Source of the DNA: Bugula neritina
Lineage: Eukaryota > Animalia > Bryozoa
Direction: 5' to 3'
DNA length: 64,000 nt
Assembly: GCA_964035545.1 (NCBI GenBank)
Contig: OZ037767.1
Coordinates: 29,094,628 to 29,158,627, forward strand
This document shows, one piece after another, positions 1 through 24,708 of this stretch. The notes under the pieces were generated by a model, which saw only the letters and a program-made list of their open reading frames with translations, ran no database searches and had not been told where the DNA came from. The position numbers were made by a program, and so were the translations under genes. Every line of letters begins with the position of its first letter. Positions within the stretch are counted from its first letter, which is position 1.

Positions 1-2
1 AC

Positions 3-1750
3 CTTTCATGTGATAGTCCATGCATTTTTGAAGGCCACTGACAAATTGGCATCGTTTACCTAAGAGCTTCAGTTGAAAAATGTCAAGCATTTGAATATCT
101 AAAATCCCTGCAACAGCAGAAATATTGAATTCAACAATTGGTAAAATACATGGGAAACATTTATCACTCTTCCTACAATAGCATGAGACTGCAAAGATTG
201 TTGCAAAACAATTTGTACGCTACCTTAAGTCTACTTTATGTATAACATTTCACTACTAAATTGATAAGCATTTTTATATAGTTTCCATGTATGATTCTAA
301 ATATATATTGTGAAATAAGTATATGCATGTTAGATATTATCTTTTAATTTAATATCATAAATAACAACCGTAGAAAAGAAATAATAAAATTTAACATAAT
401 GGTTAGTAGCACAGAATTGAGATAGCTTGCTTCACAGACAGAAAATCTTTGTTTAAACATAGTCCACACAGAGCAGTTACACTGTACAGCTGAGTAAGCC
501 CATCAAATGTTCTACATTTTTAGAACTTTCATACCATATTCACTTTCAAAATTCTTTAGCTAAAACTTGTAGCATTTCTTACGATATGGAGGCTCAGGAA
601 TCTAATAACCTTTAGCTAGATCTACACATAATTCAACATTTCCTATAAATTAATATTGCAGTGTGATATTACTGCTTATTGTAGCGGCTTTTTTTCATGT
701 AAATTCTTTATCTTGGTTAGCTTACATATTTTTAATCATGAAACATGGGTGCATAAATATATAACTATATATATACATTAATGTACTGAAATGCTATAGA
801 TATTTCCTTTGCAATAACGTATTTATCAGTTACTGATATGTAGACGCCCTAACTAACTGGTAACTTATGAGATATTGAAATACTCAAGTATCAATAACAA
901 GTAGTTCTAGTTGACATGACCCTTCCTTTACCTTGAACTTTGACATCATATTGATGCTGCAGCATGTTGCAATCTTCTCGACAATCAAAGAAAAGTTTAG
1001 TTATTCTAGCATCTTCCAGCACATTTCTAAAGCCTAAAACCACCACACCATCATGATAACAATTTCTTGTCTTGTATTAATGTATTATGTTACAATCATA
1101 TATTTTGTTCTCAGCAGTTATTTGTGTAGTGTTGGGATTACCCAGTAGTCCCTGCGGTGTAATGGTAGAGCGCCTAACTCGAATCTCAGAGTGGGCAAAA
1201 GTCTTATAATTTATAAATCGAAGATAGCATAATGTCAAAAATATATTCTTATATTCTAAAAATTGAAAGCTGCAAACATACCAAATACAAGATATTTACT
1301 GTGAATGCGAGATTTTTCTGGTTATTCACTTCATTATAAAATTTAATATACATTCCGTTATACTTTGAAAAAGTGACTACAAGATGGAATCTGGCTGAGC
1401 GTTTACGAACAACCCGGACTTAAGAATTTCAGGATACAAAGCTGCAAGTCTTATAATATAGTATTGATACATCCAGAACTTTGGTAACAAAGCTTACCTT
1501 GATCGAATATCTTTCTCCCCAAGACCACCACATCAAAGAGATACACCTTCTGTGTAGTTGCTACTTGAACCAGACACAACTCTCCAAATCTCCCCAGCTC
1601 CACACCTTCACAGTCCACACTCAGCTGAGTTTCTTCTCTCAGGAGTTGTATAACATCTGGTAGCTGATGTTCCTGGTCAATCAGTTCTATGGGAATGCTA
1701 CTGCTGCTTGACTGTAGCATAGATAACACAGCTGAACTTTTGGCAGCCAT
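3..1750 (-). CDS. EXD1/Egalitarian-like DEDDy 3'-5' exonuclease, array copy 1 (exons 1-3; continues beyond window start)
   Basis: Exons 1750-1498, 1033-932 and 107-3 with GT-AG sites, all phase 1. Translation ...[28 protein letters not shown]...[22 protein letters not shown]...GILDIQ matches the Egl-like exonuclease ExoI (DxE) and ExoII motifs. Confidence 0.85.
1148..1191 (+). repeat. tRNA-like 5' fragment (probable SINE head remnant)
   Basis: GTCCCTGCGGTGTAATGGTAGAGCG has a Pol III A-box/D-arm-like sequence but no T-arm or acceptor 3' half. Present only in the copy-1 intron. Confidence 0.3.
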
Positions 1751-21984: not shown

Positions 21985-24708
21985 TATAATGAATGCTAGG
22001 AAAGAGAAAACGCCTTAGTTTTTGAACAGTTTTAGAATGCTGCCAGGATTGAAGTGAACTTGTATTAGCTTTCGCCTTAGATGTGTGACCTGATGCCATA
22101 CTGTAGCCTTCAATTCCTTGAAAGAGTATTTGCTCTCAGTTGGGAAGGCAGCTTTGGTCACACTGAAGCTATGATTCTTGGAAAAACTAAACAAGAAAGT
22201 TGTTTGGCAAATGGATTTTCCCAAAAGGGGTTTTAGCCAACATTACTCACAGTGGAAAATTGTGAGGAAAAACATTCGGGGGAATTTAGGCCTGCTAATA
22301 AATGGCCACATAAGAGTAAGAGTTATAGGAGTTATATAAAGTTAAAGTTCAAGTTTTAGTATGCGTATCAAGTCAAGTTAAATTCCGTCTCTATTCTGTT
22401 GTTTTGCTTTTCTGGCAACTATTTTTAGAACAGTAATAATAAACATTTGCTGTGAGGTGTTGATGTGTGGATTTTTGCTTTGCTTGAATGTCTATTCCTG
22501 ATTAATCTATTTGAAAAGCAGACAACATACTTTCATACTATAACTAATAATTCTCTTGCATCTTTTCTCATCTATTTCTGACTGTGTGACAATTTCCTAT
22601 TGATGTTTTTGCTTCAAGAACAATTTCCACCTTACTGCTGCTGTAAGCAACACAATATAGAATATTTATATATATATAATGGCTGTAAGCATCACAAGAT
22701 ATTTATATACTTTTTGTCAATGAAGTTATGATGTAAATCCCCAAATAAATTATTTGTTACAGCAATTAGATGAGATTTTTAAACCAAACCACAATTCAGT
22801 AACACAAGTAGAAGATTTTAGGTTATTGAAATATAATGCATCTATAATCTAGATGTCTACTTGTGTACAAAGTGCCTTTGGCACTGAAGAAACTAATGCT
22901 GATGTAATAGATCACTGGGTATTACACAACAGCCTTGTCTTGGGGAACAAAATTTTTGGGAAATTTTAACTTAGGAATATTGCATGGCAGCTAAATAAAC
23001 TGGCAGCCAAATTCCCTATCTCCATAATTGGTACAACAATCATGTGTTTAACATTCATTTGTTAGCATGCTGTTGATCTCAATACAAATATTATTTCTGA
23101 AAAGACTGAAAAGGTTACCTCAAGTGATCAGTATCTGATCTTTTGTTTAAAAATTTCCTGAATCATTCTAACTTTTAAGTGCTATTTCCATCTAGGTGCA
23201 TTGAAGAAAAAGTTTTAAAAGCCCCTAAACTCTTTATTATAGCTGTTTAATGAATTTTGGTTTGAAGCGTGGGTTGAAATTCTTGTAGGAATAACTTAAC
23301 TTTTTTGCTACATTTCTCATTTCAAACACATGCTTCTCTCAATTTCTCAGTTGCTGCACCAACCTTGCTACGTCAGGGGTTATTTCCAGAGGAAATGTGT
23401 GTAGTGGTTAGCTGAGTAAGGAGCATCTCATATTCTGAATACAGTAAGAAGCAGCACATCCAGTATACAAGGATGGCAATCATCAATTTTCATTTCAACA
23501 TTACTTTGTTGCTGTATAGCCCAGTTTCCATTACATCTCAGGAGGGGGAGGAGACAGGATTATTTAGCATTTATTTACTATATCTAACTTTCACACATCA
23601 TACTAGCATGTAGACCTAGAACCCCAAGTAGTTGGTTATTCACAAAACTTAGACAAATTAAAGCTTTTAAAATGTACATAGTGGTAAATTTTTACAATTT
23701 TTGTTCGGAATGTAATTATGTTTTAGGTTCAGGATTGTTTTCTGCATCCCCTAAGTTAGCCATTAATTTTTATAATTTGGAAAATTTGTTTTCAATCCCT
23801 ACTGTCATTATTCGGCTTTCATCTGTTATTATAATTGTTACTTTAATGACTCAGAGATACTAATAGCCAATGTATTGTAACAAATTAGCATTATAAAGAA
23901 CATAAGGCTGGGTGTAATCAATAAGAAATCAGAAAATTCATGATGGTTGAGTGTGGAATATATTGCCCGCTGAGTAATGCCGAACTAATAGCTAATGTAT
24001 GATGTAACATGGACTTCTTGACATACCACTTATATGCTGTTTTGTTTTATGACTGTTTGAATAAGGTGATGATACTTGTGTGTAGAAGATGTAGGCGTTA
24101 GTGCTATACTGTAGTGATACAGTGAGTACTGTTTTATCTCCAAGTGTTTAGCCTAATTTCTGTTCACCTTGAATATAATATCCCGATTTCAAAGCTGAGA
24201 ATGGAAAGAAAAGTCATTTTGCCATACTGGCAATATAAGCCAAGCCAATATAAGAACACAGACTATATGATTAACTACAGAAATTTTGTTGTAACCAAGG
24301 CTAAAGTTCAATCGGAACATGTATGTTATATTATCTCACTACTGCTGAAGGCGATGTCTAAAATGTTATTTTGTAAGTAAAACCGAAGTGCTAGTTGTGA
24401 TCATTTAATTTCCTGTTTTTTAGTGAATACGCAAACTAGTAGGTAATTAAGTCAATATACATTGCATATAATACATGTACAGTATATGTATATTATATTA
24501 TATAGAATAAGCATGTTATATATACGGTATAGAATTTTACATAGTATATATCTGTACATATGATAACGTTTTATAATATATACTGTGTATATGAAAGAGT
24601 TATATAGTATAATATGCATATCTGTATATATGTAGAGTTGTATGATATATTATACCTGCATATATGGCAGAGCTGTATGATATATACCTGTATGTATGTG
24701 GAGTTGTA

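Follow-up and report, generated by a model that had tools for sequence, protein, structure and literature searches.

What are the repeated nuclease genes at one end of a 64,000-nucleotide stretch of the Bugula neritina genome: further copies of EXD1, the PIWI-interacting RNA (piRNA) pathway protein whose name their database relatives carry, or members of an exonuclease family in its own right? In a preliminary description this stretch (the window, C3:29094628-29158627 of a genome of 216.0 Mb in 321 contigs) had been read as a tandemly expanded, apparently catalytically intact family of EXD1/Egalitarian (Egl)-like exonucleases with a C-terminal zinc-finger module. Taking sequence, a structural model and analogy with a solved enzyme together, we consider it probable that the locus holds, arrayed in tandem, members of an old and uncharacterised RNase D/Egl-like DEDDy subfamily, which would act as finger-assisted 3′-5′ exoribonucleases and are undergoing birth-and-death.

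Four head-to-tail minus-strand copies lie inside the window, with ATGs at 21984, 13545, 7639 and 1750, and are numbered downstream along the array as c01 to c04. Genome-wide, 11 exon-1 matches were returned, every one within C3:29.063-29.117 Mb (a single 54-kb array), and matches to exon 6 were limited to this array as well. The window thus holds 4 of 11 copies, and the at least four genes first described grow to 11 plus two remnants, all on one scaffold; both remnants lie outside the window and consist of exons 4-5 of a c05-like gene, placed between ~9-kb block duplications (c06-c07, c08-c09 and c10-c11). Splicing of the models gives six-exon genes with phase-1 introns and GT-AG at all splice sites, in which intron 4 interrupts the ExoIII Asp codon. 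Ten of the 11 spliced models keep an open frame; an A-run in exon 4 of c10 shows a 1-nt gap, which may be an assembly error. The encoded proteins (288-330 residues) comprise a stand-alone DEDDy exonuclease, a helical linker and one finger, whose spacing we refine to CxxC-x11-CxxC. An AG lies 11 nt ahead of the ATG in c01-c03, which leaves room for a further exon upstream, probably an untranslated one. A database search with exon 1 matched a cluster that contains B. neritina KAF6040429.1. Self-BLAST at a 5.7-kb offset aligned 2734-5202 with 8444-10848 at 87.6% identity and recovered the proposed shared-homology boundaries at 3190, ~8893 and 23389. The proposed unit of about 5.7 kb therefore stands as an offset but not as a constant length, as the spacing between units is uneven (8.4, 5.9 and 5.9 kb in the window, 2.8-6.1 kb beyond).

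If these genes encode active nucleases their catalytic residues should be retained, and in about half of the copies they are. In Pfam profile searches the PF01612 cut-off was exceeded by exon 1 and by exon 2, each alone, and the two copies for which ExoI DCE, ExoII FFDCRED and ExoIII YAAKD had been reported (ATGs 13545 and 21984) do carry them. Catalytic intactness nevertheless holds for only 6 of the 11 copies, with D, E, D, Y and D all kept in c01, c02, c04 (314 residues, complete once the exons beyond the window are included), c07, c09 and c11. In c03 ExoII has gone with the in-frame loss of exon 2, c05 carries an ExoI E>A change, and c06, c08 and c10 share an ExoIII D>E change. The CxxC-x11-CxxC finger is present in all 11. 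Among 54 homologues D/D/Y are invariant or almost so, and all five residues are found in 59 of 65 sampled finger-bearing proteins from cnidarians and spiralians.

The model of a Watersipora homologue (mean confidence, pLDDT, 90) shows an RNase H-like fold, in keeping with the stand-alone DEDDy domain assigned to each copy, and RNase D-type folds are its best matches. The best solved match is Trypanosoma brucei RNase D (TbRND; Foldseek E 5e-14; VIA Z 24.3, root-mean-square deviation 2.7 Å, 229 aligned, residues 1-239), which ranks before Egl, RNase D, Exd1 and Rrp6. TbRND (PDB 7C42-7C4C) is likewise a stand-alone DEDD 3′-5′ exonuclease with a catalytic tetrad, a linker and a C-terminal zinc-finger part, although identity is ~23% and it carries four CCHC knuckles where the array proteins have a single CxxC-x11-CxxC finger. 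It is an active trimmer of guide-RNA U-tails that works with two cations and the same four acidic residues, Asp80, Glu82 and Asp230 being critical, and its C-terminal zinc-finger domain boosts binding and cleavage and is needed for full activity (PMC7797062). By analogy, the intact copies would work as two-metal-ion 3′-5′ exoribonucleases on the 3′ ends of single-stranded RNA, trimming or degrading them, and the C-terminal finger would assist in binding or choosing the substrate, as the TbRND zinc fingers do. The subfamilies differ most in the finger loop, which may reflect a choice of substrate or partner; copies with E>A or D>E changes would persist as weakened or RNA-binding-only forms. Dada transposon exonucleases and planarian egal-1 were also considered as comparisons and set aside.

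Several points weigh against this assignment. The folded protein is 53% identical to c01 and stands in for the Bugula copies. The role given to the finger is an analogy, because TbRND has four CCHC knuckles and not a single C4 finger, and the finger alone gave no structural match over Z 2.9 in the fold search. DEDDy enzymes act on DNA too. In addition, Egalitarian retains the same five residues, which are dispensable for its RNA binding and function in vivo (10.1101/2025.08.03.668247). As to the affinities of the finger, the array version is a single C4 type with four invariant Cys and zf-CCHC was not among the families listed for it; an ESM Atlas feature search with exon 6 gave no usable match. 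Cnidarian and mussel fingers weakly resemble Stc1 (PF12898), with 18 of 45 members at E ≤ 0.1 (best 6e-5) and scores of 20-21 bits against a cut-off of 24.8, reached on the second half of the profile alone, and the Stc1 profile did not match exon 6 of the window.

If the array genes were EXD1 orthologues they would be expected to resemble a protein that is defined by an Lsm domain and the absence of the DEDD residues (PMC4712191). Using a tick EXD1 query we found a separate EXD1 gene at C1:24.173-24.177 Mb, with degenerate motifs and an Lsm-like first coding exon (LSM14 E 0.005, under the cut-off). This gene and the EXD1 sequences aligned with it are without the DEDD catalytic residues, which the array copies keep. 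In quick trees with support from the Shimodaira-Hasegawa-like approximate likelihood ratio test (SH-aLRT), built without a true Egl row, it clusters with crinoid and arthropod EXD1 (SH-aLRT 96), while the array genes and the EXD1s fall on separate branches; the approximately unbiased (AU) test rejected joining the array genes with the C1 gene or with the whole EXD1 clade (p-AU 0.016 and 0.021). Neither the array nor the sequence upstream of it yielded an Lsm-like frame, in a search with a weak profile that scored the true exon at only E 0.11. WH_Egal repeats (PF23713) occur in the genome only at C1:31.36 Mb. The array proteins share the DEDDy subfamily fold of EXD1 (PMC4712191; Z 20.1), and their homologues bear its name in databases, but they differ from it in having catalytic residues and a C4 finger and no Lsm domain. 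Among PDB sequences the nuclease domain is matched best by Drosophila Egalitarian (PDB 9UJU/9RVY; E 4e-19), with which it shares the DCEG, DCRxD and YAAxD motifs, whereas the array proteins lack N-terminal WH_Egal domains and are one third the length. Judged from these sequence comparisons the array genes are neither EXD1 nor Egalitarian orthologues, in agreement with the preliminary description. A further divergent Egl/EXD1-like nuclease-domain exon without the ExoII Asp lies at C4:10783039-10783335; it forms a long branch, is unplaced, and is possibly the central region of a spiralian Egal-like gene.

The family had also been called lineage-specific, which applies to its expansion but not to its architecture. 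Watersipora subatra has four genes in ~80 kb with the same six exons and intact motifs, in an orthologous array that shares its downstream TMEM45/DUF716 neighbour with that of Bugula (in Bugula this neighbour is itself tandemly duplicated, C3:29.048-29.058 Mb). Three of the four public Watersipora models omit exons 3 and 5; both are present with GT-AG sites, and adding them restores frames of 298-310 residues with ExoIII. Bugula and Watersipora copies form separate groups in the quick trees (support 98 and 85-88), which indicates independent expansions or homogenisation within each lineage. The pairing of an intact DEDDy domain and a C-terminal C4 finger is found in 49 of the proteins sampled outside the bryozoans, including those of cnidarians (Montipora, Dendronephthya, Clytia), molluscs (Mytilus), brachiopods (Lingula) and nemerteans (Lineus); Mytilus, Lineus and Clytia have several paralogues per species. 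The whole fold is also matched by a cluster in the ESM Atlas whose 89 proteins are mostly from basidiomycetes (TM 0.87 over residues 1-284). This breadth, in 49 non-bryozoan proteins and in the fold of a mostly fungal cluster, argues that the union of exonuclease and C4 finger is old. The array has the group signature (N-terminal intact DEDDy, linker Y..n..LP..IIP, C-terminal CxxC...CxxC), and the quick trees leave the monophyly of the whole finger-bearing group undecided. Proteins named 'piRNA biogenesis protein EXD1-like' (Watersipora XP_067947534/536, Lineus XP_064642150) have the same whole architecture, from which Bugula differs in its higher copy number and its catalytic variants; no functional study of this subfamily was found in the searchable literature.

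Birth-and-death, the remaining part of the proposal, is consistent with the 11 copies, the remnants, the exon deletion and a mosaicism of exons. Exon 5 of c04 is 95-96% like that of c06, c08 and c10 and its other exons follow c01-c03, and such differing nearest neighbours point to gene conversion or unequal crossing-over, the two processes that together would have built the array. Protein identity between copies is 57-94%, far from what false haplotype duplication would give. Ratios of non-synonymous to synonymous divergence (dN/dS) are 0.15-0.59 with no pair above 1, at synonymous divergences of up to ~0.7, and between subfamilies the finger has evolved faster (dN up to 0.50) than the nuclease domain (0.02-0.23). 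An independent B. neritina assembly (GCA_010799875.2, ~86% DNA identity) has genes like c04, c05, c06 and c07, arranged in this order and sharing the E>A and D>E changes; the indels in its array are in homopolymer runs and for that reason were not taken as pseudogenisation. Between the two assemblies the ratio of non-synonymous to synonymous differences (pN/pS) is 0.31 for c05 (E>A; Fisher p 2e-4) and 0.25 for c06 (D>E; Fisher p 2e-5). This purifying selection between Bugula lineages indicates that the altered copies are being maintained and are not simply dying.

A more specific reading, compatible with a finger-assisted exoribonuclease, is that these proteins are defence effectors, induced by viral or double-stranded RNA challenge or serving the piRNA or small interfering RNA pathway against transposons, with the expansions as the mark of an arms race. 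We treat it as a tentative possibility. Multi-copy states recur (11 copies in Bugula, 4 in Watersipora, several in Mytilus, Lineus and Clytia), the finger loop changes fast, the relatives EXD1 and TbRND handle small RNAs, and Stc1, which the cnidarian and mussel fingers weakly resemble, is an RNA-interference adaptor domain. However, every dN/dS is below 1 (by pairwise comparison, not site models), the Stc1 scores do not reach the curated cut-off, with no match for the bryozoan query protein, the genes next to the array are of the housekeeping kind (TMEM45/DUF716, hnRNP R/Q-like, Rab GTPase), and a literature search found no paper tying the subfamily to immunity. A defence or small-RNA role as such is plausible on the sequences, in view of recurrent expansion and a quickly changing finger loop. 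The wider proposal strikes us as doubtful, namely that an overlooked family of pan-eukaryotic, patchily retained zinc-finger exoribonucleases provides marine invertebrates with innate RNA-defence or small-RNA trimming effectors, that it expanded independently in different lineages, and that its conserved, catalytically dead paralogues serve as RNA-binding decoys or regulate the active members.

Somewhat unlikely is the view that the array is drifting near neutrality, with one or two housekeeping RNA-trimming copies and the rest redundant and decaying under frequent recombination. Microsatellite-rich introns, ~9-kb block duplications, an exon deletion, frameshifts and a different arrangement of the array in the second Bugula assembly would all follow from it, yet 10 of 11 frames are open despite synonymous divergence to ~0.7, and c05 and c06, which are divergent subfamilies, have been conserved from one lineage to the other. 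It is also improbable, in our estimate, that the proteins are non-catalytic RNA-binding adaptors in the manner of Egl and EXD1, the fold gripping RNA and the catalytic residues being incidental. Such adaptors would account for the loss or change of a catalytic element in 5 of 11 copies, two of these under purifying selection, and for a contig of a third Bugula sample in which a c11-like copy has ExoI D>G, with Egl as precedent; the retention of all five residues in 59 of 65 finger-bearing proteins is instead what would be expected if catalysis matters. Barely credible, and largely refuted, are the ideas that the array is an artefact of assembly or that its genes are plain EXD1 orthologues whose upstream Lsm exons were overlooked, since the 'EXD1-like' database names and the AG that permits an upstream exon are set against a genuine EXD1 gene elsewhere, the AU rejections, the missing Lsm-like frame (by a weak profile), Watersipora models that begin at the same exon, and a 132x HiFi assembly (PMC11480708) with a colinear array in an independent one.

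The positions of the copies and of neighbouring genes are given in Table 1. Copy c01 has two identical terminal exons, the tail of c02 is shortened by a 4-nt insertion downstream of the finger, and an intron of c03 holds a ~450-bp insertion (6587-7032) that is absent from other copies.

Table 1. Array features and neighbouring genes, in positions of the window
Feature	Position	Strand	Remarks
Upstream end of duplicated unit (shared-homology boundary)	22940..23389	none	Equivalents at ~8893 and 3190; self-BLAST
c01 exon 1 (ATG; ExoI D-C-E)	21732..21984	-	PF01612 match on equivalent c02 exon
c01 exon 2 (ExoII, FFDCRED)	21241..21342	-	
c01 exon 3	20616..20720	-	
c01 exon 4 (ExoIII Y; Asp codon split by intron 4)	20148..20261	-	
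c01 exon 5 (completes ExoIII D; linker helix)	19486..19614	-	
Stray partial exon-5 copy within c01 intron 5	18213..18307	-	72% identity to c02 exon 5
c01 exon 6 (CxxC-x11-CxxC finger, stop)	16748..17022	-	c01 model 325 aa, no internal stop
Duplicate of c01 exon 6, 100% identical	15413..15687	-	~1-kb local duplication, 95% across block
c02, 304 aa, DEDDy intact	10255..13545	-	
c02 exons	13545-13293, 12895-12794, 11957-11853, 11461-11348, 11243-11115, 10466-10255	-	
c03, 288 aa, exon 2 (ExoII) deleted in frame	4552..7639	-	
c03 exons	7639-7387, 6113-6009, 5659-5546, 5434-5306, 4817-4552	-	
c04 exons 1-3 (span 3..1750)	1750-1498, 1033-932, 107-3	-	Exons 4-6 just beyond window
Presumed hnRNP R/Q-like gene (rest of window, 33500-63500)	~33.8-40.5 kb	+	Named from open reading frame translation
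Presumed Rab GTPase	~42.4-45.9 kb	-	Named from open reading frame translation
Presumed spondin-like gene	~53-55 kb	-	Named from open reading frame translation

Two further observations concern the surroundings. A 4.4-kb long terminal repeat (LTR) element occupies 26564-30990, with identical 565-bp LTRs, TG..CA ends and a 5-bp target duplication (CCTCA). Its single 1043-residue frame (minus-strand open reading frame 27198-30329) matches SCAN, protease and integrase profiles, and no reverse-transcriptase match was returned in the profile search; it looks like a recent, internally deleted Ty3/Gypsy element, presumably of Gmr1 type from its protease-integrase order. Elsewhere in the assembly a DEDDy (Mut-7-like) match at C168:3189-3695 runs through 2 TAG and 5 TAA stops, which suggests that C168 is a contaminant contig of ciliate code.

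At present, then, the locus is a tandem expansion of an ordinary kind, in a DEDDy subfamily that is widespread, has been misnamed and is unstudied. Many invertebrate genes called 'piRNA biogenesis protein EXD1-like' are not EXD1, and as they retain the catalytic site and have an added zinc finger, counting them as parts of the piRNA pathway is misleading. Bugula has a true, dead EXD1 beside a probably active sister group, together with natural active and altered paralogues, and this combination in one genome makes it a convenient system for asking what the ancestral active EXD1/Egl nuclease did. If it proved true that the family is an RNA-defence effector, it would be a new component of invertebrate immunity.

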